A stretch of DNA of 32,490 nucleotides. Origin: Klebsormidium nitens. Lineage: Eukaryota; Plantae; Klebsormidiophyceae. Shown piece after piece: positions 1 to 30,714 of the stretch (position 1 is its first letter; each line of letters opens with the position of its first letter). The notes beneath the pieces are model-generated. The model worked only from the letters and a program-made list of their open reading frames with translations, was not told where the DNA came from and did no database searches. Both the position numbers and the translations under genes were made by a program. The DNA lies in assembly GCA_000708835.1 (NCBI GenBank), contig DF237724.1, positions 1 to 32,490 of the forward strand. The letters are read 5' to 3'.

Positions 1-3000
1 TCGTTACATGATTCCGTTCATCATGCTTGGCCTTCGATGTGCAGTTTATGTGCAGACCGACAGGAAGGCACTGAATCGGACGGTTACACTGAGGAAGAGA
101 AGCTTCGCTTAGCGCAGGCTTGGTTGACGAAGGGGCGCAGCTTGATGCCTGGTGTCCACGGGGACGACGACGACGGGAAGACGGTGATATTCATCAGCAC
201 ACCACCATGAGGTGAGCAGTATGCTGGCCTCACCAGCTTCTGCGTGTCTTTTGGCAGCAACTTCTTGTGCGAAAACCTGAGTCACCCTGGATATAAATTG
301 CAACGAAGTGATCTCTGATCAGAAAGCCCGGTTAAACCAATCCGGTTAGCCCGAGTCCACCATTTGCCCAAGCAGGATAAGTAGGATGAAGCAATTTCTG
401 ATTGAAGCACCCAACATTCTTCGAAACGGCTAACGTCCTCACTTCCCTGCAAAGGCAAGGCATGATCGAAGAAGGCACACTTAGTAACGCGGCATCATGG
501 GGCTTGTTGCCTTTAGAGACTTCCTTAACAACTCCGTCAAATTGATGGCCTTCCAAATCTCTTGCAGAGGAATGTTCTTGACCTCTCACCAGTTCTGCCT
601 GCGCGGAGATGATGCTCGGAGTATCGACTTGCCTGATCTGTACTCAAAAACGTACCAGCACGTCGGGCCGGACGTCCCTTTGTACGTGGGAGGCGTCAAC
701 TACTCGGGGAAGACCAACAAAGTGAGGGCTTATACACGTGCTCGAGGGTGGGAAACTGTCATGCTCGTCGATAAATTTTCCTGAACCATCAATTCGTCTA
801 TGTTTCCTAGGGTGAGTTGGCTATAGAGGGCGCCGTCAGATGCGAAAATGGCTTCGTGAAAAGATCCTTCGGACAGACCCTTTCGCCCACCTTTCGCCCA
901 ACTTTTCCCATTGCAGAATGGGCGTCTGGAGTACTTCGGCGGCATCCGCCACATGCAGGTCGAACAATGTGCGGTCGGGGCGGTCGCCATGCAGCTTTTT
1001 CAGACATTCCACCTATTGGGTGCTGGTGTCCCTGACTTCAGCAGCAGAGAAAGCTGGTGGGTACTCGTTCGATGAGGAATTCACTCATTCTGCTTCGTGA
1101 ACTACGCTAACCGTCAATCAAGAGCAGGTTTTTGTATTTGAATGATAGCGGCTTTTAGAGCCGGGTACAAAGTGACAGAATCAAATCCTGTCTTTCGAAA
1201 GTGAATATCAACAGCGAAGATCGGTAAGGCCCAAGGTTATAAGTCTAGGCCGTAAAAATTTGCAACTTTCTAACAAAGCATTGATTAACCTCTGGACTAG
1301 GTACCGCTCTTTCTGGCTAGCTTCCCATTGCACGGGCTTCATTACTAGATTTCTTACTCGGTTCTCAGGTGTTTCGCAGGTACAACTTGCTTCCTCTCTT
1401 CTACGAAAACGATGACGTCAGCAGTAACGTGACGTATAATACGCAGCTCAAGCACTTCAAGCAGGCATACCGCGAGCAGGAGATTGTATCTGGACAGCAA
1501 GCTTACGCATGCGCCGCGCGGCGCATTAGTGCGGCATGCTGAGAATAACGGGTGAGTAAGTTCACAGCGATCAGGACCCTTTCGAAAATAGAATCTCCTC
1601 GTCAGGATGCCAATCTCAAGCTGCCGCAACCCGTTCTCAGACCGCCTTTGCGTGCTGATCTGGATGCACGGTGTGGGCCACCAACACGGGCAGAGTGAGA
1701 GTTTCAATCTTGGGTGCAAGTAAAGCTCGTCAATCCCTGAGTTTCGAGGGCGTGTGTCTCGTCACCCGAAGCCGCTCCTTCAAAGCCCGACTGGCAGTAC
1801 AGGTCTTGCAAGAGTGTTTGGGGTCTCGCCAAATTGATCTCGGGAAGGCGCTGATACAAGGGCTCTCCACAAAAGCTTACTGATCGTCTCGGTCTCTTGT
1901 GTTCAGCGCCAAAGAAGCTGAGAGTGCTCGGCTCGGCCGTTGGATCTACGACCACTTCCGGACTTCGTACCTGCCAGTGCATCAACTTCCAGTTGGGATC
2001 ATGCTCGTTCAGGCGGGGTTCAAGGACGATCGCAAGGGGTACTTCCTGCCACGTGGTCGGGTGCTCCCCTCACAGGATGAGTACCCAGGGCTTGCGAACC
2101 AGATCTTTCCATGGGCCGACGAGGAGCTGCGGAAGGTGAAGCAGGTATGCTCATCATTACTGCTGGAAAGGTTGTCTAGGGGCTTTCCAGCATCTTCGGC
2201 TCTAAGAGAACTAAATGATCTGGCTGCAAGCACGCTGCTTGCGCTGCTTCTCGTCGTTGCTTCCATCAAAACCTTTTGACGACTATGCTGCACATTTTGA
2301 TCTTCCTTTGTGCAGAGGAATCTGACGGGACCAGCCGGCCAGCACGACATCGCCGCGCAGAAGTTCCTGGAGCTGCTCATTGCGCTGCGGGCGGTGCTGC
2401 TGCAAGACGTGGCACTCCTTCAACGGATGGGCAAGTACGAGAACCATCCCATAATCTACCACCACTTCTTCGAGGGAGAGAAGTGGGACAAGTTTTGCGG
2501 CGCTGTGGAAGAGGTGTGCAACACGCCTGCTCCTCCTCCGGAGCTCGCGAACATTCCCCCTGAGGTAAGTAAGGACACGGCCCGAGATCCTAAGTATTGA
2601 GGACGTCACGTGCTGGAGGACTTCGTTAATGTTGTCGAACAGGGCACGAGACTGCTTTAGCAGGGTTGATTTACATTCTCAAGCGACTGGATTTGTGCAG
2701 CCCGCCGCTGTCTGTCGGGAAGGAAGCCAAGTTTCGATCTAAAAAACATTTGCTGCGACAAGGGCCGAGGGACAGCAGGATCCACAATCAGTTCATGCGG
2801 ACAGGCTTAGATGAACGGCAGAACATTCTGTCAAGCTTTCGTCCTGATGAACACGAACACTGGTCCATGGATCCGTAGGTTCGACTTTCAAGGTCAACAT
2901 GCCCTTAGCTTGTGATGAGGGCAGATGCTTCTCGGAAAAGTAGTTCAAAAGATAACAAGGGAAACAGCTCAAGCTGTATTGGGCAGGTCTCTTCCCGCAT

Positions 3001-3349
3001 TTGAAGACACTGATTTTCCGTCGGGAGTGGTGTCTATTAAATGGCAAGAGCCAGCTTTTCAACCCAAGGGTTTCCTTCCGCCTTTGAAACCGGCTCGTGG
3101 GTGCAGGTGGTTGCCGTTTTGCAAGACCAACAGGTCCAGCTCGCGCGCATCGAGCGAGAGAGCCAAGCCTCGAGGGAGCGCGAGCAAGCCCTGCAGAGCC
3201 AGATGTCCGCCGTGCTGCACGTGCTCGAGCGGCTTGTGTCAGCGTTTCCGGGGGAAGACAGCCAGGCGCCGACACGTGCCCCGTCGGCCAAGGCCGCTGC
3301 CCAGTCGCCAGCAGCCCCGGAGCCTCGGCGGACCGCCACAGGGTTTTTT

Positions 3350-4060
3350 GCCCGCCCTCCGTCGGCGCCTGTCGCGGCCGCTGCGGAAGTTGCTCTTCGA
3401 GCTGCTGCTCAGGCCGCACGAGCGGCAGCAACACAAGCCGACATTGAACAGGCCACTGTTTCGGATCCGAATGAGAGCGGTCAGGCGAGCAACGAGGGGC
3501 GCGAAGCGGCGGGTGAGAGGCCGGGCTCTGCGAACACCAAAAACTTTTATTCTCTTGGTCCAGGTCGGGCACTGTCTAGGGCCTAGATTGCGTTAAACGG
3601 TGTCAATTGCTGGCAATCTCGAGAGTCGCTCTGGAGCACCTCTTGTAGGTGTCAATGTGCGGACTGCCTTATTGCAAGAGAATTCCAAAGATGTCTCGAT
3701 GAATCACAGCTTGTGCTCAACCCCTTTCATTATCTATTTGAAAGTCGCTCGTGACCTTTACACCTTTACTGCGAAGCAAAGGGATTACTTCGCATTCAGG
3801 TACAAGAACGGGCCGACAGTCGAGCGCCTCAGCGCTTCTGACGGAGCTAAGTTAGATTTCACCATGAATCCCTTGTCTCCAGGTGTCGACTCGGTTGCCC
3901 GTCCTTCATCCGCTCCTGTTGCGGCCGCGGCTGAGGCGGCCCTCAGAGCCGCTGCCGAAGCAGCTAAGGCTGCTGCCGTGCAAGCGGCAGCTGACGCGGC
4001 CGCCACCCAAGATCCGGACGCGCTAAGCGGCCAGGACGAGAACGACGCACGTGCCCCTCG
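3350..4060 (+). repeat. Internal duplication of an approximately 55-aa Ala-rich coding segment in the Crypton linker (3350-3512 and 3897-4060)
   Basis: ARPPSAPVAAAAEVALRAAAQAARAAATQADIEQATVSDPNESGQ versus ARPSSAPVAAAAEAALRAAAEAAKAAAVQAAADAAATQDPDALSGQ. Many of the DNA differences fall at third codon positions. Confidence 0.85.
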
Positions 4061-4954
4061 GACAACCGCCCAGGAGACCGTTCAGCGTGAGACAGGTAAT
4101 TGGGATCTGAAGCACGCACGTAGTGATATTGATCGCCGTGGGTTTGCAACGAGACTGACTTGGTGTCACGTGTAAAAACTTCAAACTTTGCAGATGTTGC
4201 TGAGCGTTGCATTTGTTGATTGAGACTCATCTTTCGCTCAATCACTGTCGTTAAGTGATCGAGAAGCCTTTGCATCGTCATCGGAGTTCTCAGTTCGCAT
4301 ACGACAAAGGATCCGCCCAACACAGTCCACCAGCTAGGATAAGTCGGCATCTAAACAGGTCTACAGTAGAAGCACATTTTCTTCAATCATTGAGGTTCGA
4401 AGGTCTTGATACCTCATTGACTTTCCTTGTGGAACATTCTTCCAGTTTTCAGTAAGCCTTATACTCTTGTCAAGCAATGACGGGGTCCTTCAAGACGTCT
4501 TTAATTTATACCAGAGGAGGAATGCTTTAAGTGCACCTGACGTTGTTCTCTGCACTGATCAGGTTTGCGTGAAGGGCTCGAGCCGGCGAACGGCAGTCAG
4601 AACGTGACGAGCTTTCTGGAAGGTGAAATGGAAACGGAAGAAGCGACCGGGGAGGGCTGCCGGCAGCCTCAGTCGGAGGAGGAAGGGGCGAAAGAGAGTG
4701 AAAACCGTTCGGAGGGCGAAAAAAAAGGAGAAGTGGAAAGTGAGGCAGGCGGGGAGAGCGGGACGACTTCGCAACCTTGTTCGGAAGGAAACAACGGAAA
4801 AGACGATGGGGAGGAAGCGGGTACTTTTAGAAGCTGTCCGACAGCAAGTCAAGGCGATGTCGGGGTTAGCCCAAGTGGCTCGGGGAGTGGCGGTTTAGGG
4901 GCAGCGGATGAGGGGACAATAGAAGATGCTTCGGTGGTCCCCGAGTGGGCTTTG

Positions 4955-5260
4955 AATTATATGATTGGGGGACACTACACCTCGGTTGCAGAGATTTGGC
5001 AAGAATGGGCATACGGACAAAAAGGGTATCCCTTGTCTTTGAGACGTATGGAGGAGCTGTGGGGTACTCGCTGGAGAAGAGGGCGAGAAAACGAAAGCAA
5101 ACGTCTCTCAAAATTCCGGAAGATTACAAGTTTGGTCGAAATCGTGTTGAGGCAGGGCAATGTAGGCGAGGCGGCAGCAGTACAGGCCGTTGAGAATAGC
5201 ATGATTGCATGTGGCATAGATCCGGCGCAGCCATGGAAATATTGTGAGTTGCTTCGAGAG
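4955..5260 (+). other. GCR1_C-like DNA-binding domain, followed by a basic NLS-like tail
   Basis: YMIGGHYTSVAEIWQEWAYGQKGYPLSLRRMEELWGTRWRRGRENESKRLSKFRKITSLVE matches the recognisable GCR1_C pattern (T/S-V-x-x-x-W-x-E-W...L-E...G-x-x-W-R). The C-terminus reads RQKGKRKKTGQSESNRKRKKS. Confidence 0.8.
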
Positions 5261-5399
5261 TCAAAAGCTGGCAATTCTGATGAACAAGACGAACCGGCCA
5301 GGCAAAAAGGAAAGCGGAAAAAAACAGGTCAGTCGGAGTCAAATAGGAAACGCAAGAAGTCCATCGCTTATTGACGAGTTCACATAGCTAGGTTTGCAG

Positions 5400-6110
5400 T
5401 AACTTCGAGTACGAGTTGGGGAACGAGAAGTAGACTGCAATTGCTGGCTGTTCAGGTTGTGAGTACTGGCATATTGCAAGCAGATCAGCGCAGTACTTTG
5501 CCGCAGGTTCGACACAAGCATGAAAGCATATGTTGTATGGCTATTTTGAACCACTCCGGAATGATGCATGTGTTGTCACTATATACGCGTGTCACGGCGT
5601 ACATGTTAGACGTTGGCAAAACTGTTCGATGTGCTGCCTATGTACGTATGCATGCAGTCATTGCGCATGTTAAACGTGAACTTCGAAAACAATTATCTGA
5701 ACGGGCGCTCATGCCAGCAAACGCAGCAGCGTCACACTACGCCTACGTACTGATCGGAGGTACTATTTATCCGTGTCACATTAGAATCTGATTGGCTAGA
5801 CGTACGGGACTTGCGATCCGCGTGATTTGCACTGGCATGACTGAGAGAGACTAGCTGAGCAGTGCATGCTAAATATGTAAGCCCTAAGTCACAAGGCCGC
5901 CGCGCCGGCTGCATATGACGTGCATATACCATTGCAATCATACGAACTTTTAGTGATCGCACAATTGAATGCGTCCGTCTGTTGCAACAATTGAGCTAGT
6001 CGAGATCGTCCTTTGAGCTGACAAAATTCTGTAGGCTACTAAAGATTCACAGTGGTAGACAAGCTTACTACTGTGCGCGGCGGCGTGATACGTTGGTGGC
6101 CGCGCGATTG
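5400..6110. other. Palindrome-dense / purine-pyrimidine-alternating intergenic tract 1
   Basis: CAATTG 5438, AGTACT 5462 and 5492, CATATG 5527, TCCGGA 5555, TATATA/ACGCGT 5580-5590, TACGTA/TGCATGCA 5643-5656, TGCGCA 5662, TTCGAA 5682. No credible ORF. Boundaries are approximate. Confidence 0.6.
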
Positions 6111-7392
6111 CCAGTTGGCTTGAATACCAAAACACGGTTCATGCACCTTAGACCTGACCAAAGGCGTGCTCAGAACCTTGTATTCCGAAGATCTTGGCTA
6201 ATAGTTCTGCCCGAAAGTTCTGTCCCAAGATTTACCACCATCTTCGCAGGGACAACAGCCTTCGAATCTCATGCTTGCGCGGCTCAGTGGGCCCCCTCCG
6301 GTGTTGGCCGGGTTCTATATGCCCCCCCTCAGGCTGGCCGAGACACCTGCAGGCTGTCCAGAAATGTGTTAATGGAGACAGTGGGAGAAGCGAAGTAACT
6401 TCGAAGTCCCCACTTGAACCGCCATTGATATGGCATTATGTGTTCTTTTCGGGCCCGACCATCCTCCACTACTACTCCACAAGTTGTTTCGACCTGACCA
6501 CGGTTGCAAGACAGAACTTCAACTTTCTAGAGTGGAATGGAGCGACCTGCACGACTTCCGCGAACTTCAAGGAGCAGATTGTAGGGCGGTCACGTCCCAT
6601 CAACAGTGGAACCGCTGTCCGTTTCGATGCGTGCTTTCTATCTACGAGTCAATTGTTTTAAGTTTCTTCGAAAGTTCCACGGTCCGTTTCTTCGTTCTGA
6701 ATCAAGACAAGCACAGACATCAGGATGTCAAGATTCCAACTAGGATAAGGTTACCGCCTTTCCGCGAGGTCGGCGACGTCAGACTCTTCACAAGAGACTA
6801 GATCCAACGTATGAAAAATGAAAACGTAAGCTGACAGCCTGGCAGTACGTCAAAGGAACTAAGCTGGCAGGATCCTGGCAACAACAGCCCAAGCCTACGC
6901 TTCCAAGCAGATCAGTCTTCCCTCACCGTATGGCGATGAGATGAACTCCGCGGCTGGGTTCTTCAAGGCTCAGTACTCGTGCCCCGTGTCACAAATTGTC
7001 TTCGAACCGGCGGGCTTGGACGAACTCCGTCAGAGGAACTCCCAAGAAATTGCATCCTGCAGGTTATGATATAAACGTTAACAAAGGTTAGACTGATCTG
7101 CACAATAAAGCAGATTGAACCTGCTCTTGTTCGAAAGACTTAGTATGCAGTCGGCTCAAAAGATGAGCTCAAGAGATGATTGAGTGGCAGTTGATGAAAG
7201 GCCCAGATCATTGCGGTTATTATTTGGAGGACTGCTCAAGCTCCTGGCACACGGTACTCTGTATCCGCACCACTTTGAATAAAGAGCTTCGAAGAGAAAC
7301 AGCCATATCCCCTCCATATCCTTGGATGATTCTCGAAGCTGGACAAGCTGAATCTAGCCCTGAAAGCTCTACTAGTACAGAACGTCTTCTGA

Positions 7393-7437
7393 AAGACCAC
7401 AAAAGAAAAGACCACAAAAGACAAGACCACAAAAGAC
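7393..7437. repeat. 15-bp tandem repeat x3 (AAGACCACAAAAGAM)
   Basis: Directly visible: units at 7393, 7408 and 7423. Confidence 0.95.
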
Positions 7438-8053
7438 AATCGACTCAACGTCTATTGGACATATGTAGTTCTGCCGAAACTGTTGCTGCAAACTTCACAA
7501 CGACCTCTACTCTTGCAAGGAAGGCATCTCTATTCCTGATTTGAAACAAGAGATGCATATACTGCTGACTTAGCCTGAGGCCTATAAACAATCTGCATTT
7601 GCAGAAGGACGCAGAAAGGGCAATCATAGAGCTTGTTGATAAGCTTGTTTTCGAGACTTGCCTTCCTTGCATTCTTTTGTGACCAGACCCAGCAAAAAGT
7701 TCTGATAGAGGACAGCATTGGTCCATGAGTTTACACCAATGCTGTGCTCCATCCTTGGTAGACCACATGCTATGACTAAGTAAGGCCCAGCTGTACAACG
7801 ATTGTTCAAATCAAGCTGCGTGCCGACGCTGCATAACTTAACACAAGCTCGTGCTAACCTCTTCCGAGAGCATCTTGACTTGACATCTTAGCTGGATACT
7901 GCCTCGATTTCAGGCCCTGAGAAACTCATATCAAAGAGCCAAAGAGCTCAGCTTCCTAAACTTCCTTGCTTCTGATGAATTCAAAAGACTGCCTTGAGCG
8001 TATCCATGCCTTCAAAGCAGAAAGCTCCTTACCTGAGCAATGCCACATCACCA

Positions 8054-8113
8054 GTGCAGCTGTGTCCAGTGCTGAGCGGGGCTGTAATCAGCTGTGCAGC
8101 TGTGTCCAGTGCT
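8054..8113. repeat. 20-bp direct repeat GTGCAGCTGTGTCCAGTGCT x2, period 40
   Basis: Copies at 8054-8073 and 8094-8113. Confidence 0.9.
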
Positions 8114-8999
8114 CAAGGCAGCTCAAGGTTCTGCCAAAAAGGCGCCATGGAAGATCAGTGAAGCTATGCAATGGCAAACTTGTGCTTAACTTGTAAGGCT
8201 CATCTAGGGGGCAGTATTATAGGTCAGATAGGTTACAGGCTGCAGCCCACCAAGGCTGGACTGGCTGGACTCGGGATGCAGTAGAACCCTAAAAGCATGA
8301 TGCGGTAAAGGATGTTATGTATAGCTAATTAGCCTCGGTTGGGTTAAGTCGAAAACCATTCTCAAGCTTCTGCCCCACAGAACCGAAGGCTCGGGGCATC
8401 CGACCTGGATGGAAATTCTTCAATATTTCAGGAGTTGGACCGACAAGGAACTTCGCGTCGAAAAAACAGGGCCAGGCACAAGGTCCTCTCGCGGCACTGA
8501 AAAGCGACGGTAAATTGAGGTGACCGGTCCTACCGTGCGACGGAGCCTGGCATTCGCCGCGAAACCGTGCGATACCGGCGGTCCGCCAGCTGAAATGTCA
8601 TAAACTACAGCAATGGGGCAATGGGGTGGACAATGTCAATGGAGCCAGGTCGGGATATCCACGCGAGAGAACCTAAAATTGCAGAACAGGCAGCCTCTTA
8701 TCAAAGTGGCCGTTTCTTACATCTTGTGGTGATCAATATGAATTCTTTTGATACTGAGATGCCTCACATTGCGTCACATTTCAGAGTGCCATTGTGATGC
8801 ATCTGATGTTCCTGTTGGTTCCCACAACATCTGTCTACTTACATTAGTGCGCCTGATCATGCCACAAGGCTTTTGGAAAGTTGATGTCACGATTCTAATC
8901 CAGTCTTAGGGAATTAGGCTCAAGCGGGGGCTCAAGTACCATTTGGGATAATCACCGTCTTTCCAAAAGCCCATCAAGCCGAAGGCGCCTGGTGGAAAA

Positions 9000-11828
9000 A
9001 TGGAAGCAAGCAAGATGGAAAGTGGTGTGAGACGGTGGGCCGTAGATATTCGAGGGTGGGAGGCAACAGATGAGGAGTTTGCATATTGCCTCAGTCTGCT
9101 TCCTGAAGAAGAGACTCTGGCAGTCAACAGGTGAGCAGGCCGTGCCCAGAGTTGTGAAGCATGGTGCAACGATGGGGATTCTAAGAGGCTGAGGCGATAA
9201 CCTGAAGTTGGATCTCAAGGTCATACAGGTCACAATGTTGACGAAATGATATTCGTGCTCTCAATGGAGAGTTTCTGCCTATCTGCTTTGCTAGGCATCA
9301 ATTTGAAGCTTTCTTTCAGCTCATTGGGCTGGTTCTCTAAAAAAGTTTAGTAGGGGACGCCGCTGTCAGCTTCCAGAGTGAAGCAAGCCATTTTCAAAAA
9401 AGACAACAGCTCTTCGTCTGTTGAAGTTCCTTCTCAAGAGCGGCCCTGAACTTATTCAAATGCTCTTGAGCTGTATGCACCAGATAGCATGACGTCTTCT
9501 TCGCTGTTGAAAGTATAACACATATGACTGCTGCCCCACTGACTGTGTCTAATTGCCACCTCCTGCTGTCATATGCAGATATGTCCACCTTGCGGATCGC
9601 AAGCGCGCACTGATCAGTCGTCTTCTTCAGCGGAAACTTGCACATGAAGTCCTGGGCATCCCTCTGGATAGAATCCAGATTCAGCGGACCTGCGAAGGGA
9701 AGCCTTTCCTGGTATGGAGCCCCTAAATAGTTAGACAGCAGCCACTGGTGATTATCTTATTGTGAGACAACCTTTCTTATCAAAGACTGAAGAGCCCTCT
9801 GGATGTTCTGCAATGGAGAAGTGTCCATGAGATGATCTGGAAGTTCCCTCTTTATGCGCCAGGTGCATGCTGAATAATAACGTGGAAACCGAGGACACCC
9901 TTCTGTTGAGATTCTCTAACTTGTTTCACATAGATTTGCGCTGCGGGCGCTTTCCTGACACAAGTTCCTGACAAAGTTCCAGAAATCCGAAAGTGAGTCC
10001 TGTCTGTACAGAGGGTAAATCAAGCATGCGTGCTTCAGTTTGGGGAACTCAGAGTCAGCGTGCGAATGGACTTGGCCGGAAAAGACGTAGTGCTGGTCTA
10101 ACTCTACTCTTACTCACAAACCCAGCCGTTTTCTGCGATTCTGCCCCCCCAAACCCCCCAGGCCCATCCTGTCTCCCTTCTGAAGCTAACACCCCCAATC
10201 CTTCTACAGTGCAGGCAAACCCCGGGGTGCAGTGCCCCTTCCCCTGCTTCAACTACAATGTCTCCCACCATGGCGCCTACGTCGTCCTGGCATCGGACCC
10301 CGCACGCCTAGTTGGCGTCGATGTCATGACGCACTCCCCCATGCGCCAGCCCGCACCCCCCGCAGTCGAGTTCTTCAAGAACTTTACGAAGTGTTACACG
10401 CCCTACGAGTGGGCAAACGTGATGAAGGGGGGCCCCACAGAGACAGGGCTGCTGGACCAGTTTTACAGGCAAGTGATTAAAATGCCGAGCGGTTTTCTGC
10501 TTGCATTTTGGCTTGCGACCTGCTGATCTTGGCTTCGGCCCCTGATTGCTTTTGGACCCGTGACAAAGCAGCCCATCATCGTTTGCTGTTTCAAGGTAGT
10601 AGGCAATTTTGTTCACCAGCCGACAGCGGCCTGACCCAAACCTCTATGGGCAAGTGATACCTTTTGTTCCCTGGTGTAGAAAGTGGCCGCAGAAACTTGA
10701 AAAAGCAACGGAATTGTTTGGGAACTGGGTCCTGACATGTGGCCTGCCCAGTACTTTTCTCACATGGAAACCTCCACAACGGCTTTCATAGCATTCCTCG
10801 GGGACCCCATTCGCCTCTGTTGCCATGCGCATCGTTTCGACTAATATTACGATGCTCCACTCCGGGTGCAGCTTGATTTGTCGTGTCGTATTCTCGTTGT
10901 CTCAACTCAAGGACATGGTCGGAAAGGCGGGCATCACCAGAGGCCTTACCTAAAAAGCACTCTTGAAGGCCAATTTCTTGAACTCCTTGCGTTGTTTTTG
11001 ACAGTCGAAAACGTTTGAAGCAGGTACTGGTGCATGAAAGAGGCCTACATCAAAGCTGTGGGGATCGGTTTGGGCTTCGAGCTGCGGCGCGCTGAGTTTC
11101 ATTACTTGCCCGAAAATGACATACTCAGCAGACGGGCAACGGTGTCTATCGACGGGGTTAGAAGACCGGAATGGATCTTCACGCTTGATCGGTTGGGGGA
11201 AGACCATTGGGTGAGGCCTCTCTTAGAAGCGTGGTCTTCATTCACAGAGTCTGAACAGCGAACACACATTGGGCGATTCGTGAGTGTGGATTCGTCGAGC
11301 AACTGTGGTGTCCACCGTCTGCTGGAAAGTTAAGTGCCTGGCTACTTGAAAGCAGCAGTCATTTCGTGAAGGTCGAAGTGCCGAGTCGGACGTTGCTTGA
11401 CTTGATATTGTCACGTACATCAGTAATTTTGCAGACTTGTGCACCTTATTGACATTGTGGCCGCTGATGGCAATTGCAAGGGTATTGTCCATAGTATGGT
11501 TAGCCGCAGGGGCATTTCTTTGAAAACCGACCTTCGACTGCCTTGTTGTGCTTTAGCCATCAACGTCCCTCGTTTGATTACCTTCAGATCTGGAAGGGTG
11601 GTCGCTCTTTGTTCATTGATCAATGTCTTGTCTTTGCAGGTCTGTGTAGGAAGGGGACCGCCGGAAGAAGCAACCAGCAGTTGTTCTTTCCCAAGCAGCA
11701 GCAAGGCGGCACCAGTGGTCGCACAGCCAGGAGAGAGTGTTCTAGATATCGACTTTGAATTTTTAGCTGTTGAAGATCTGCTAATCAAAGATGAAAAGCT
11801 CTTCTGGCGGACTTCACGGACAATGTGA
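9000..11828 (+). CDS. AASDHPPT: Sfp/AASDHPPT-type 4'-phosphopantetheinyl transferase, about 297 aa, 5 exons
   Basis: Exons 9000-9130, 9579-9711, 10215-10468, 11024-11210 and 11640-11828 total 894 nt in frame. Motifs: GVRRWAVDI, DRKRALISRLLQ, RTCEGKPFL, FNYNVSHHG, VGVDVM, YWCMKEAYIKAVGIGL. Intron 3 uses a GC donor (AG|GCAAGT at 10469). Confidence 0.93.
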
Positions 11829-19300: not shown

Positions 19301-22300
19301 GATATTATTGGATAAGGAAACAATACTTCACTCTGGCCCGTACAAAATGAGATTGACTGGGTCGCGCTACAAGCCAAGTGCTCTATGTGGGCAAATCAAA
19401 CTTTTCTTTTGATGACACTGAACACTTTCTCGTCTCCTTTCCGCACAGGACTTCCCCCTAAAGACCCCCGACAGCCCGCCGTCCTCCCCCTTCGAGCGCG
19501 ACCTCTTGGACTACCTAGAAGCCCTCCGGTGGCCCGGCGCGCTTGTCCCCTCCCCAGACGGCACCGACGAGGCGACACGTGTCAACGCCTCCTTCTTCCG
19601 GCGGTTCGACTTCTCGCGCGCGGCGGTCCGGCTGGTGGGGTCAGTGCCTGGGTACCATGGCGGGGCGGCGCTGCGCAAGTGGGGGCACATGAAGATGCGC
19701 GCGGTGCTCGAGGAGGAGGCGTTTGGGGACGACTTCAGGAGGGCGCCGCTCGTGTATCAGGTGAGGCGCCCGCTGGGGCGTTCTTTTGGGTAAAAGGTTT
19801 GCGAGTTTGCTGACTGTGATATTTCATTTTTCATCTTTCGGTTGGTAGACAGCACGTCCAACGAGTGAGCTTTTTGGGAAAAAAAGTTCATTGCATGTTC
19901 CTTCATTTGGGCAGTGGCTCGCGAAGATTGCTCTTGGGATTGACCGTGTATTCTCCGTTGCAAGCCAGGTTGTGTGGTTCGGTCTACCTATTACAACACG
20001 AAGACTTCTAAGTATTTGATGGGAAGTCGAAGATGCTGCTGGCAAAGTAACGCATTGGGTCCCATCATGAATCTGGTTCCAATTTTCAACGCGAGTGTAG
20101 GGCTGGAGTTGACTTCTTTGTGGCTCCTTTTCCGACTCGTCAAGCTTTTACCTTCTGGTCCGATCCTCGAAATCAAGCCGTCTTGCCTCTACTCAAAAGC
20201 TTCATTGGAATCCTTGATGGAAACCCAGAGATGTGTTTTGCAAATTAGTGTGTCCCAGCAATCTGTCGCAACCATTGAGCATTTCCAAGCCAACGCCGGT
20301 GCATTTGGCCTTGGTCGAGTCTTGTCGATGCAACTCGTCTGGAAACGGCCAATCCCTGTGAAGCAGCTTTCTCGCGCCTTCCTGCCGTGGAATTTCTTGC
20401 TCCATCAGATAGTATTTTCAATTGGGTATTGCCGAAAGCGAGACACGGGACAAGCGCACTCTTTCCGACCGACCCCGGACAGCTCACCCCGCTGAGCTTT
20501 ACTTCGTCCTCCTCTCTCACTTCGCCCTCCTGAAATCTCCCCTCTCTTCTTCCAACCCCCTCCTGGTTCTCGCCCGCCGAGATCCCTCCACGAGCGCTGG
20601 AAGGCCGGAATGGCGTTCCTGCCTGAGCCAGGATCGGACGCTTTTCGGACCGCGCTGATGCCTTTTCCCTCCCCTCCTCTACTTTCTCATCGCTGGGCTC
20701 CCTGGACGAGCTGTGAACTTCCAAAGCATTGTCCAGCCTGAGCCACATCCGGACGGCTTTCGGACACTTGCTGATTTTTGCCCCATTTCTCCCTTTCCTA
20801 GTTCTCGTCGCTGGGCTCCCTGGACGAGCGCTGGATGTCCGAATTCTTGGCTAGCCTGAGCAAGGGCCGGACGGCTTCCGGACCGCCGCTTGGTCTGGGA
20901 GAGGTGCGCGTCGTGTGGCCGACAGTAGAGGACGTGCGGCAGTCCATAGAGGGCTACTGCGCGGGGGGCGCAATCCCTGGGCCTGAGAAAAATGTGGCGC
21001 GGCCATGGCTGCAGCGATACTGGTCCAAGTTTCAGGTAAGCAGAAAATGATCAGTGCATTTTTTGATGATGAGTTCCATAGTTCGACTGTTGCCGTATAC
21101 GAGCATAGTGAAAAAATGATGAAGACGATATATCAGCGGTCGGCGCTTCGACTCTGTTGACTTCGAAGATAGAAAGAAGAGCGTACTTGTTTCAGTACCT
21201 CGGCTTTTCAGTCGAGCGGTCGTCACGTACGCTTCTCTGAAGGTGCAGGTAAACTTGAAGCTCTTTCTGATCCTCAACTCACGATCATCCGAAGGGTTCG
21301 CCAAGTGGTTTGTGATCTGTCCCGTAAGTATGAGCCATCAAGCCTCTCGCAAAGTTCAAACTGCTATTCAAGTCGCATCAAGGGAACGTTGCTCCCGTCA
21401 ACGCTGGGGGGAGAGAGAAGCCTTTGGCTGTCCGCTTAGATTTACCGTCATCATTCTTCTCAGGTTCGGGACATCATGGTTTCACACAACAAATAGGTTC
21501 AGATTCTTGCAACGCTTTGCGGAGCGGGCCGCCTGGCGGTGAATGCCGGGCACAGATCTGCAGCCGTCCCAAGGCTACATTGGGTACATCGAACGGCTTG
21601 TTTTTGCAGCCGTCCAGATCCAAATTGCGACACGGACCTGCTCAAGAACGTCCAGCTTACAAATATCCTCTCATGTCTTTCCTGCAGGCGGACCACGCGG
21701 GGCGCGGACGCGTGATGCCGCACATCAAGACGTTCGTGCGGCACCGCGGGAACGACGTCGCGTGGTGCCTGCTCACGAGCGCCAACCTGAGCAAGGCGGC
21801 CTGGGGGTCGCTGCAGAGAAACGATACCCAGCTCATGGTGCGGTCGTACGAGCTGGGGGTACTGTTTGTGCCGTCGCTGGTTGCGCGCTACGGCCTCGGG
21901 GAGCAGTTCTCGTGTACGGACAACGCAGCCGGGGGGGCGGGGCAGAATCTTAGAATTCTAACGCCAGGGGGTAACCGCAAAACCTCTGGCGGGGTTGCTC
22001 AGAAAGCGAGGGTAGAGGAAGTAAAGGAGGGCGGTGAAGTGGGTGCCTGCGAAGGAGAAAGCATTTTTGAGGCTGGCAGTCCGGGCGGGTTTGAAAAGGG
22101 GGGTCCGACAAGTGGAAAGAGAAAACGTACCGGGGAGAGATCCGGGGGCGAAGGATCGGAGACGAGGACCCGGGAAGAAGCAGCGGGAGAGAAAGGCAGG
22201 GCAGAAGGACCAGGGGGAAGGACCGGGGGTGACGCACAAGGGCAGAGAACGGTACGCTTCGTTAGCACTGCCGAGCGGCCGGGCCCGCACGATTCGCAGC

Positions 22301-22809
22301 TGCCGAACAGCGAGCCGTCCGATGGAACGCCGGTGATCGTCCGGCTGCCGATCCCGTACGCACTGCCGCCAGCAAAGTACGGCCCCAAAGGTGAGGCTCT
22401 GAGTCAACATTAATAAACCGCTCTCCCCTGATTAACCTCTTCTTGGACCGTGAATACTCCAGTGAGGCTCTTGGCCTGCTGCTACAACGTGCGAGAAGGC
22501 TTGGCAACGCAAAGACTTGCTGCGGTTTTTGGGAGAGGCCGGAAAAAGGGGGAGACAGGACGATAAGCACAAACGCGGAGAAGGACGGAGATGCACACGT
22601 GAAACCACCTTAACCTCTGGCGCAAAGAGTTCCTTTCAGATTGCAAATTCTCATTGTGGGTTATATCTCGGCTATCTGACCCCAAGTCGTCCACTGCAGA
22701 CCGCCCTTGGGCCGTGGACAGGCAGTACGTCCAACCCGACGTGTACGGAGAAACTTGGCCTCGGACGGTGGTCAAATACGGAGTGAAGCAGGCAGACGAG
22801 GGGGAATGA
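16304..22809 (+). CDS. TDP1: Tyrosyl-DNA phosphodiesterase 1 (plant alpha type, N-terminal FHA-like domain), about 923 aa, 8 exons
   Basis: Exons 16304-16531, 16724-17536, 17835-18032, 18726-18899, 19449-19760, 20802-21035, 21688-22390 and 22700-22809 total 2772 nt in frame. Catalytic motifs [13 protein letters not shown] and [17 protein letters not shown]. Also [30 protein letters not shown]-like [18 protein letters not shown] and [11 protein letters not shown]-like LGR..VSRRH..VGQNP. Intron 4 uses a GC donor (CAG|GCAAGC at 18900). Confidence 0.95.
18579..18725 (+). repeat. Approximately 60-bp direct duplication (period 85) of the 3' end of TDP1 intron 3
   Basis: CATACTCCTGAGAGCTT..GTGACTT..AT/GCCAACCACAGCAGAYGCTCTG..GCAG at 18579-18638 and 18664-18725. 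The second copy ends at the acceptor used in the model. Confidence 0.85.
20540..20890 (+). repeat. Three tandem copies (about 117-bp period) of the acceptor plus 5' part of TDP1 exon 6; two are decayed pseudo-exons
   Basis: Exon-like starts at 20567, 20684 and 20802 share TTCTC..CGCTGGGCTCCCTGGACGAG..GCCTGAGC..CGGACGGCTT.CGGAC. Only the third keeps the AG acceptor. Copy 2 reads [10 protein letters not shown]. Confidence 0.85.
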
Positions 22810-29195: not shown

Positions 29196-30007
29196 CTTCA
29201 AATATCTGGTACTTCTGCGCTTAACTGCAGCAATGAATCTATTCATTTGTTCCAAGCTTTCGAAGCAGATTTGTTGGCTGAGAAACCTTATCAAGCATAC
29301 CTGAACAGCGGCGCGGTTCTCTCTCTGCAGTCCACACCCGCGGGGCGGCGCGAGTCTCCAATCCCACCCAACTTTCTCGGCCGTCCGATGGGCCGGGGGC
29401 ATCCGAATGCCGTCGATCCGAGATTCGGCTAAAATGTGCTGAAAGTGCCCGGTACGCCCGTGCATCTCATAAGCTATGCGCCGCCGAGTCGGAGTTGCAG
29501 TCAGTATGGACTTGTATCTTGCCACTGGACTGACTCGCGGCAGGAGGGCTGCATTGTGTGGCGCCACGGGCATTGGCGAGCTGGAAGGCGGAAGTGTGCG
29601 CGTCTTCTTTCTGGCAAGAGGTGAGCAATGCGGCATTTGTTTGCTTTCAAGTCGCTGTCACCAATGGAGAGTCGAGCTATCATTGAAGAGGCTGGTTGTA
29701 ATGCTGGATACTAGTACTGCCAGTGTAGCAAAGTCAAGCGCATTTGTCAGCAGTAGACTACTAAAGTGGAAAGACGTGACACTGGCTGCACTAATGGGGT
29801 CAAACTCCAAGGGCTCTTGTAGCACGCCACTCAGTACACTCCGAGTCATTGAGCTGAAGTGGTGGTCCAGGCTTCAGCTCAATGATTTGTGGAGAATAAA
29901 GCATGAGCTTTGAGGTACCTCCGTTGCCAACCAAAGTGCCTCCAAACTGGATGACTTACTGAAGCCCGGTCGAATTTGGCATCTTACACTGTGATCGTCG
30001 AGAGTGG

Positions 30008-30714
30008 NNNNNNNNNNNNNNNNNNNNNNNNNNNNNNNNNNNNNNNNNNNNNNNNNNNNNNNNNNNNNNNNNNNNNNNNNNNNNNNNNNNNNNNNNNNNN
30101 NNNNNNNNNNNNNNNNNNNNNNNNNNNNNNNNNNNNNNNNNNNNNNNNNNNNNNNNNNNNNNNNNNNNNNNNNNNNNNNNNNNNNNNNNNNNNNNNNNNN
30201 NNNNNNNNNNNNNNNNNNNNNNNNNNNNNNNNNNNNNNNNNNNNNNNNNNNNNNNNNNNNNNNNNNNNNNNNNNNNNNNNNNNNNNNNNNNNNNNNNNNN
30301 NNNNNNNNNNNNNNNNNNNNNNNNNNNNNNNNNNNNNNNNNNNNNNNNNNNNNNNNNNNNNNNNNNNNNNNNNNNNNNNNNNNNNNNNNNNNNNNNNNNN
30401 NNNNNNNNNNNNNNNNNNNNNNNNNNNNNNNNNNNNNNNNNNNNNNNNNNNNNNNNNNNNNNNNNNNNNNNNNNNNNNNNNNNNNNNNNNNNNNNNNNNN
30501 NNNNNNNNNNNNNNNNNNNNNNNNNNNNNNNNNNNNNNNNNNNNNNNNNNNNNNNNNNNNNNNNNNNNNNNNNNNNNNNNNNNNNNNNNNNNNNNNNNNN
30601 NNNNNNNNNNNNNNNNNNNNNNNNNNNNNNNNNNNNNNNNNNNNNNNNNNNNNNNNNNNNNNNNNNNNNNNNNNNNNNNNNNNNNNNNNNNNNNNNNNNN
30701 NNNNNNNNNNNNNN
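30008..30714. other. Assembly gap (707 N)
   Basis: Run of N. The poly-X ORFs across it are artefacts. Confidence 1.

Follow-up and report, generated by a model that had tools for sequence, protein, structure and literature searches.

The analysed stretch of Klebsormidium nitens DNA (32,490 nt, hereafter the window) most probably carries at its left end the relic of a CryptonF-type gene, with at least nine exons and a reading frame broken before the HxxR box. The gene occupies positions 1-5374 of the plus strand, is interrupted by at least eight introns and ends at a stop codon at 5372-5374. Its most upstream exon in the window, E0, lies in a frame that is open back to nucleotide 1, and the 5′ part of the gene probably continues past the left edge; the window holds the 3′ four fifths of this CryptonF-type DNA-transposon gene. 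The locus is KFL_007750010, the public protein of which (P0001) maps back at 100% identity and is annotated as an 'Ndc10 domain-containing protein' with an open frame of 648 aa. A preliminary description had placed an intron-rich CryptonF-type tyrosine recombinase (YR) of a streptophyte alga at 45-2564. The nature of the host, the many introns and the break-up of the gene in lists of open reading frames (ORFs) are all borne out, but the proposed end is not, as three further exons beyond 2564 run on to the stop codon.

On its domain composition, the locus is a CryptonF-type gene that combines a YR of the NDC10_II family with a GCR1_C domain, the pair that defines the CryptonF group (Kojima and Jurka 2011, PMC3212892). 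The preliminary description had proposed searching profiles with a spliced protein, and the public spliced model matches Pfam NDC10_II at E=9.1e-19 (68 bits; gathering score 26.3), well past any chance match. GCR1_C (PF12550) was found in the ORF at 4565-5371 (E=1.3e-11, 45.1 bits; gathering score 23), on the same strand as the recombinase exons and linked to them through exons of the public model. This domain aligns with that of the homologue P0030 at 33% identity (BLASTP, E=8e-10). The block DIAAQKFL..LLQD, which had been taken for GCR1_C, is instead the C-terminal end of NDC10_II (profile 271-313). Pfam scans of single exons gave only two weak NDC10_II matches, in the correct order. With an HMM built from 19 homologues, the six exons E0 to E5 are collinear with the profile at E-values from 6e-3 to 2e-18, the two halves of E3 being marginal (0.014 and 0.081); an HMM restricted to Closterium proteins lay too far from the gene for exon 3 to be resolved. 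The homologue profile also matches the Ndc10/Cbf2 structure PDB 4aco (E=7.5e-6). A phmmer search of PDB with KFL_007750010 returned one designed protein only, which we rejected as spurious. Phage_integrase gave no match at the Klebsormidium locus and a sub-threshold one in the Closterium relative P0010 (E=0.0071), and the link to the tyrosine recombinase superfamily is drawn from NDC10_II together with the motif pattern. The label 'transposon' for KFL_007750010 rests on homology and architecture.

Table 1. Exons and related features of the CryptonF-type gene in the window (a slash marks an exon border)
Feature	Position	Strand	Description
Exon E0	45-151	+	frame 1, CADRQEGTESDGYTEEEKLRLAQAWLTKG; acceptor AG 43-44, donor ctg/GTGTCC at 152
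Exon E1	519-721	+	frame 2, FLTSHQFCLRGDDARSIDLPDLY ... YSGKTNK; donor aaa/GTGAGG at 722
Exon E2	917-1056	+	frame 2, NGRLEYFGGIRHMQVEQCAVGAVAMQLF ... SRESW
Ancestral exon E3	1380-1551	+	two frames; donor cgg/GTGAGT at 1552
E3, frame-1 part	1381 to ~1485	+	YNLLPLFYENDDVSSNVTYNTQLKHFKQAYREQEI
E3, frame-2 part	from ~1487	+	YLDSKLTHAPRGALVRHAENNG, with H1508 and Arg II (R1517)
GT..AG interval, 64 nt	1434-1497	+	encodes YNTQLKHFKQAYREQEI; probably no intron
Exon E4	1907-2144	+	frame 3, AKEAESARLGRWIYDHFRTSYLPVHQLPVG ... FPWADEELRKVKQ; W1941 and nucleophile Y1968
Exon E5	2316-2564	+	frame 3, RNLTGPAGQHDIAAQKFLELLIALRAVLLQDVALLQ; C-terminal end of NDC10_II
Exon E6	3107-3512	+	helical VVAVLQDQQVQLARIERE stretch, then Ala/Pro-rich linker
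Exon E7	3883-4095	+	Ala-rich linker; exact match to KFL_007750010
Last exon E8	4563-5374	+	acidic linker, GCR1_C ~4973-5197, basic tail (KGKRKK..RKRKK), stop

Each exon of the recombinase part has support of its own (Table 1). Nucleotides 49-135 of E0 correspond to positions 146-175 of the 19-homologue profile (E=0.006), and this exon gives weak tblastn matches to the Closterium proteins P0016 and P0021 and to P0030; the putative E0/E1 junction follows from phase and from the spacing in Closterium. E1, which carries the catalytic Arg I and the beta-hairpin Lys, corresponds to profile positions 171-235 (E=4.7e-8), with lRG and gKtnk aligned, and matches residues 1-50 of KFL_007750010 at 100% identity (tblastn). 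E2 matches positions 82-135 of Pfam NDC10_II at E=0.0074 and the homologue HMM at E=8.5e-17, and shares 43% identity with the fungal proteins P0028 and P0029. A HMMER search with E4 among 1.8 billion proteins recovered 24 at E<=1e-3, the locus's own public protein among them, and E4 matches the homologue HMM at E=2.3e-18. E5 matches Pfam NDC10_II at E=6.5e-4 and the homologue HMM at E=2.8e-15, with 70% identity over 20 aa to P0028 of Coprinellus.

Downstream, the helical stretch of E6 would likely form a coiled coil; the exon equals residues 278-413 of KFL_007750010 exactly and shares 48% identity with the paralogue fragment P0025. E7 repeats the end of E6 as an internal duplication (3284-3472 versus 3831-4019, 51% identity, tblastx E=3.5e-12), and the ORF of E8 is open over 4565-5374. 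Outside E3, all exons are open and bounded by canonical splice sites, so that decay of the gene is slight, a point against reading it as a relic.

All six catalytic residues (R-K-H-R-W-Y) are encoded in the DNA of the locus at the coordinates first reported for them, although not in a single reading frame. Arg I is R602 (codon cgc, within LRGDDAR), the Lys is K710 (aag, within SGKTNK), and the HxxR box at 1508-1519 reads cat gcg ccg cgc, with its His at 1508 and its Arg at 1517. Together with the Trp and Tyr of E4, these residues align to the conserved lRG, gKtnk, tHaaR, GRW and sY of the homologues, and the spacing from H to W, 27 residues, is the same as in P0030. Right after the nucleophile Tyr the Klebsormidium copy has an insertion of two codons (PV), which is unique, since every homologue has a gap there.

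The reading frame is broken by an indel at ~1485-1495, inside the exon that encodes HxxR. Up to ~1485 the homologous sequence lies in frame 1 and corresponds to profile positions 287-324; from there on, SKLTHAPRG...ENNG lies in frame 2 and corresponds to positions 319-337. In shuffle tests the real score was reached in 1 of 2,000 shuffles for the frame-1 half and in none of 2,000 for the frame-2 half. Within E3, stops interrupt frame 1 at 1540, and frame 2 is interrupted at 1430; only in frame 2 does the strong donor at 1552 (GTGAGT) join E4 in phase. As the HxxR box thus lies in a different frame from the upstream part of its exon, we regard the Klebsormidium copy as a defective member of CryptonF. 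The earlier proposal that six exons splice in phase into a complete catalytic set is therefore upheld for the collinear order of the exons and fails for the set itself, which splicing does not restore across the break in E3.

A set of six residues could still be expressed if the 64-nt GT..AG interval in E3 were removed as a mini-intron, leaving an intact recombinase, but we consider this very unlikely. The GT at 1434 and the AG at 1496-1497 would indeed give an in-phase junction (..NVT/KLTHAPRG) that brings HxxR into phase; the donor at 1434 is also the one chosen in the public model, and the remaining exons are all open. Against this, none of the ten aligned homologues has a gap in the 21 residues that the interval encodes, and the interval itself scores as homologous sequence, its score being reached by 32 of 2,000 shuffles when taken alone and by 1 of 2,000 with its exon context. 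The donor GTATAA moreover has no G at +5, the pyrimidine tract before the acceptor is poor, the interval is far shorter than the six other measured introns of the gene (171-542 nt), and its removal would shorten the W-to-H spacing from ~42 to 21 residues.

The frame break could be an error of assembly. That a sequencing or assembly error conceals an intact, autonomous Crypton is nonetheless quite improbable. Such an error would fit a copy with canonical splice sites and only one disrupting lesion in ~4 kb of exons, on a scaffold that is small (35.5 kb) and contains an N gap; however, the sequence at 1480-1500 holds no homopolymer or simple repeat, a second unique change, the PV insertion, stands beside the nucleophile Tyr, and the public annotation also offers no model that runs through HxxR.

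Measured against its homologues, the public model of KFL_007750010 departs from the expected gene twice, once at the HxxR box and once in the core of GCR1_C. It joins the weak donor GTATAA at 1434 to E4 (1433/1907), so that HxxR is skipped, and it splices out 5026-5399 (5025/5400), which removes most of GCR1_C; a protein made from the locus, for example according to this model, would lack Arg II and most of GCR1_C. The model keeps its 648-aa frame open while omitting both elements, as might a domesticated, non-catalytic host gene for a structural or DNA-binding protein of the Ndc10/Gcr1 kind known from yeasts. The descent of Ndc10 and Gcr1 from CryptonF is a precedent for such a fate (PMC3212892), and diverged paralogues of the Klebsormidium gene keep its intron borders. 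Domestication is nevertheless unlikely here: the segments left out by the model can still be recognised as coding sequence and are near intact, which is unexpected after long-standing exaptation, the catalytic R, K, W and Y are kept, and the GCR1_C domain that the public model splices away has an ORF that is open throughout.

Relatives were sought with residues 1-280 of KFL_007750010, as a word search with the entire protein was swamped by low-complexity words; in whole-protein searches the public protein (the model without HxxR) was the only query. Full-length relatives with both NDC10_II and GCR1_C, at 27-31% identity, include proteins from fungi and from Phytophthora-like sources. Protein fragments in the Logan and JGI collections, which we take to be paralogues, share 62-82% identity and have identical borders of exon 4, and a Closterium family provides relatives from another streptophyte alga at 33-39% identity on exon 4. 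The profile search gave no chlorophyte relatives, its matches being almost all oomycete-type relatives of P0030, and a five-row alignment pattern run on metagenome contigs gave 211 matches, none of them a true relative.

In a tree of 21 NDC10_II proteins, which covered neither CryptonS, CryptonA and CryptonI nor Chlamydomonas references, long branches dominate, and vertical descent and horizontal transfer are not separable. A pairing of Klebsormidium with Coprinellus in this tree was discounted as long-branch attraction. The Closterium NDC10_II proteins (CAI5941263.1, CAI7744489.1 and others; Zygnematophyceae) show the same YR motifs (RG, KT.K, H.AR, GHW and AY), whereas their C-terminal region, unlike that of the Klebsormidium gene, has no significant match to GCR1_C. 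Their branches are very long, and the data neither support nor reject them as sister to the Klebsormidium gene (AU test of a Klebsormidium+Closterium clade, p=0.26). It is a long shot that the recombinases of the two algae form one old, vertically inherited streptophyte lineage in which the present locus is turning into a non-catalytic, Ndc10/Gcr1-like host protein. If true, the introns of this lineage would have been retained from a time before Klebsormidiophyceae and Zygnematophyceae diverged, and the yeast domestications would have a parallel on the branch that led to land plants.

The Klebsormidium gene shares with the CryptonF elements of fungi and oomycetes (Goodwin et al. 2003; PMC3212892) the order of an NDC10_II-type YR, a helical linker and GCR1_C, at 27-31% identity over the YR and 33% over GCR1_C. 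It differs from them in having many more introns (at least eight), a long linker that is Ala-rich and acidic, and an internal exon duplication. The Crypton-derived host genes of yeast, Ndc10/Cbf2, Gcr1, Hot1 and Msn1, belong to Pfam families that are also found at the Klebsormidium locus; according to PMC3212892, the yeast proteins no longer have the catalytic residues, all six of which the Klebsormidium locus still encodes. In Chlamydomonas reinhardtii, CryptonF elements are described as active transposons, and CryptonF-1_cRei is one of its autonomous Cryptons (López-Cortegano et al. 2023, PMC9977147). CryptonF-1_cRei, whose membership of CryptonF we read from its name and which we liken to the Klebsormidium locus by description and not by sequence, also has a host in the green lineage, although a chlorophyte rather than a streptophyte alga, and it is active, whereas the Klebsormidium copy is frame-broken.

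In an intact element of this kind, GCR1_C and the N-terminal part of the recombinase would, by analogy with the family, bind the ends of the element, and DNA cleavage and rejoining at the R-K-H-R-W-Y site would proceed through a 3′-phosphotyrosine intermediate. A short terminal sequence would be recombined with a near-identical target, as in CryptonF-1_cRei of Chlamydomonas. A CryptonF element is expected to end in a target-like motif or in direct repeats of only 5-6 bp (6 bp in the fungal and oomycete elements), and to have neither terminal inverted repeats (TIRs) nor long terminal repeats (LTRs). Positions 1-9000 of the window contain no TIR, no LTR and no direct or inverted repeat of at least 20 nt, and the absence of TIRs and LTRs there is as expected for Cryptons. 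Neither a cargo gene nor a 3′ landmark was found among the ORFs at 5.4-10 kb or by Rfam over 1-12 kb. Taking the locus to be a frame-broken CryptonF-type gene, we consider the Klebsormidium copy to be probably a recently inactivated, non-autonomous relic.

The preliminary description had seen in the locus a sign of an under-described lineage, which overstates its novelty, because active CryptonF elements had already been described from C. reinhardtii (PMC9977147) and the locus itself was already annotated. No prior description of Cryptons in streptophyte algae was found in the literature searched. The Klebsormidium copy leaves the understanding of how Cryptons work unchanged, and, with the green lineage already a known host of active CryptonF, it is a modest addition: a streptophyte alga, with relatives in Closterium, joins the hosts of CryptonF-type tyrosine-recombinase transposons.

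The locus is a probably defective copy of a CryptonF element in Klebsormidium, of a kind that is itself already known, and it is already present in the public annotation as an Ndc10-domain protein. The surrounding DNA is of nuclear eukaryotic type (~52% GC, one N gap), and three-frame translation of 1-3700 gives short open stretches with GT..AG intervals between them. When the ORF of exon 4 (E4) was used as the query in a HMMER scan of 1.84 billion representative proteins, the top match (99% identical) was P0001, from a 35,526-nt contig and named at source 'hypothetical protein KFL_007750010 [Klebsormidium nitens]' and 'Ndc10 domain-containing protein'. Because P0001 maps onto the window by tblastn in nine pieces at 100% identity, it is the public spliced model of this locus, and it was used for all whole-protein searches. 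The Pfam NDC10_II profile, proposed beforehand as the test of the assignment, matched P0001 with E=9.1e-19 and 68 bits (gathering score 26.3), and the family assignment therefore stands. Scans of single exons gave two weak but collinear NDC10_II matches (911-1072, profile 82-135; 2310-2597, profile 271-313).

Nine exons were delimited, and a custom HMM of 19 homologues (fungal, Phytophthora-like and Closterium), run on stop-to-stop fragments of the window, matched these fragments in perfectly collinear order. Profile positions 1-145 have no counterpart within the window; as frame 1 is open from nucleotide 1, the gene's N-terminal part probably falls outside the window on the left, or outside the scaffold. 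An Ala-rich linker (SAPVAAAAE.ALRAAA...) is present twice, at 3284-3472 and 3831-4019 (+) (tblastx, 51% protein identity, E=3.5e-12); because the end of E6 is 51% identical to E7, this represents an exon-sized duplication inside the gene.

Exons of the Crypton gene (limits from homology and splice signals) and matches of the custom HMM
Feature	Position	Strand	Profile	E-value	Remark
E0	<=45-151	+			open frame extends to nt 1
E1	519-721	+
E2	917-1056	+
E3	1380-1551	+			holds frame break
E4	1907-2144	+
E5	2316-2564	+
E6	3107-3512	+
E7	3883-4095	+
E8	4563-5374	+			stop at 5372-5374
HMM match	49-135		146-175	0.0062
HMM match	521-721		171-235	4.7e-8
HMM match	914-1060		235-283	8.5e-17
HMM match	1396-1509		287-324	0.014	frame 1
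HMM match	1496-1552		319-337	0.081	frame 2
HMM match	1908-2252		338-428	2.3e-18
HMM match	2337-2546		414-481	2.8e-15
HMM match	4931-5221		562-655	3.4e-10

The combination of a tyrosine recombinase with GCR1_C defines CryptonF (PMC3212892). The preliminary description was right about this architecture but not about its reason: the block it pointed to, DIAAQKFLELLIALRAVLLQD, is indeed encoded at ~2347-2405 but is the C-terminal end of NDC10_II, whereas GCR1_C sits in the last exon, and the element, rather than ending at 2564, extends at least 2.8 kb further. GCR1_C (PF12550) was found in the ORF 4565-5371 (E=1.3e-11, residues 137-211, ~nt 4973-5197), and E8 aligned with the GCR1_C of P0030, an oomycete-type relative (E=8e-10). 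KFL_007750010 treats 5026-5399 (+) as an intron and ends in NFEYELGNEK, read from 5400, so that most of GCR1_C is lost although the ORF is open to its stop; this removal reflects either alternative splicing or an artefact of annotation.

The catalytic residues proposed for the recombinase are all encoded where they had been placed, namely R602 (LRGDDAR), K710 (SGKTNK), H1508-A-P-R1517, W1941 (LGRW) and Y1968 (RTSY), but the intact frame that had been supposed to join them is not supported, as HxxR is out of frame with the first part of E3. That first part, the conserved W-YNLLPLF...VTYNTQLKHFKQAYREQEI, is read in frame 1, with a stop at 1540, whereas the HxxR part, SKLTHAPRGALVRHAENNG, is in frame 2, with an upstream stop at 1430; it is also frame 2 that is in phase with E4 when the consensus donor GTGAGT at 1552 is used. 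Because both halves score as homologous to consecutive stretches of the custom profile and the segment is ungapped in all ten aligned homologues (for example, ITYHTQRASYLKAFGTLGLAFSKVTH in P0030), the ancestral E3 was continuous. In shuffle tests of the two halves (2000 shuffles each), the real score was reached by 1 and 0 shuffles, and 14 residues separate the A(F/W/Y) motif and the His in these homologues, compared with 15 and one third here. As read from these alignments, this copy appears to carry a frame-breaking indel at ~1485-1495. No homopolymer is present there, and a read error, though possible, is therefore not the obvious explanation. HxxR could formally be brought into phase by splicing out a 64-nt GT..AG interval (GT 1434 to AG 1496-1497), which yields ..NVT-KLTHAPRG and whose donor is also used by KFL_007750010; however, this would cost 21 conserved residues, its donor and acceptor are both weak, and the other measured introns of the gene span 171-542 nt. 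The public model itself splices the donor at 1434 to 1907, dropping HxxR entirely. Besides the frame-breaking indel and the missing 5' part, a two-codon Pro-Val insertion (1974-1979, +) lies two residues past the nucleophile Tyr (SYL-PV-HQLPVG) and was found in no aligned paralogue or distant homologue. From these features we infer that an active recombinase could not be made from this copy.

No direct or inverted repeats of at least 20 nt were found in 1-9000, and no second Crypton copy within the window. The ORFs at 5.4-10 kb are without a Pfam domain, no Rfam match lies in 1-12 kb, and host-type genes begin at ~10 kb. A short sub-threshold match to the 4'-phosphopantetheinyl transferase N-terminal domain at 9993-10523 (+) (E=2.6e-5; 24.8 bits, gathering score 27) probably represents an exon of the first host gene that follows the element. 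A tyrosyl-DNA phosphodiesterase exon, of a host DNA-repair gene, lies at 21424-22410 (+) (Pfam Tyr-DNA_phospho, E=5.5e-28); it is probably by coincidence that it lies near a gene for a tyrosine recombinase. Near the right end, a run of 707 N (~30004-30710) marks an assembly gap.

CryptonF is described from fungal and oomycete hosts (PMC3212892), with active copies known in Chlamydomonas (PMC9977147); the literature searched yielded no report of Cryptons in Klebsormidium or in any other streptophyte alga. By analogy with the family, end binding in an intact member would fall to GCR1_C together with the N-terminal region of the recombinase; R602, K710, H1508, R1517 and W1941 would activate the scissile phosphate, and Y1968 would serve as the nucleophile. 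A short terminal motif would be recombined with a near-identical target, following the Goodwin model; the CACCG/CAYCG insertions and clean excisions seen for CryptonF-1_cRei of Chlamydomonas reinhardtii agree with that model (PMC9977147).

Full-length relatives, with NDC10_II and with or without GCR1_C, come from Tilletia, Coprinellus, Apiospora and Phytophthora among other sources, and their profile matched Ndc10/Cbf2 among solved structures (E=7.5e-6). One pattern scan of metagenome contigs found no relatives. More distant relatives (33-39% on E4), all with NDC10_II, occur in four Closterium strains (P0010, P0013, P0016 and P0019, from Closterium sp. NIES-53, Naga37s-1, NIES-64 and NIES-65); their C-terminal region was not recognised as GCR1_C, and no description of this recombinase family was found in the literature searched. 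Some of its members are clearly truncated or degenerate. Long branches dominate a maximum-likelihood tree of 21 proteins, in which the pairing of Klebsormidium with Coprinellus was flagged as suspect, and a Klebsormidium and Closterium clade was not rejected by the AU test (p=0.26). The close protein fragments (62-82% identity, from Logan and JGI sources) are prokaryote-style ORF calls running from the intron before E4 into the intron after it. As both E4 borders are common to these fragments and this copy, they form a family with inherited introns. One JGI paralogue fragment, P0025, aligns at 4972-5040 with the GCR1_C region as translated in the wrong frame (frame 1), and this paralogue thus seems to be frameshifted in GCR1_C, pointing to further decayed copies.
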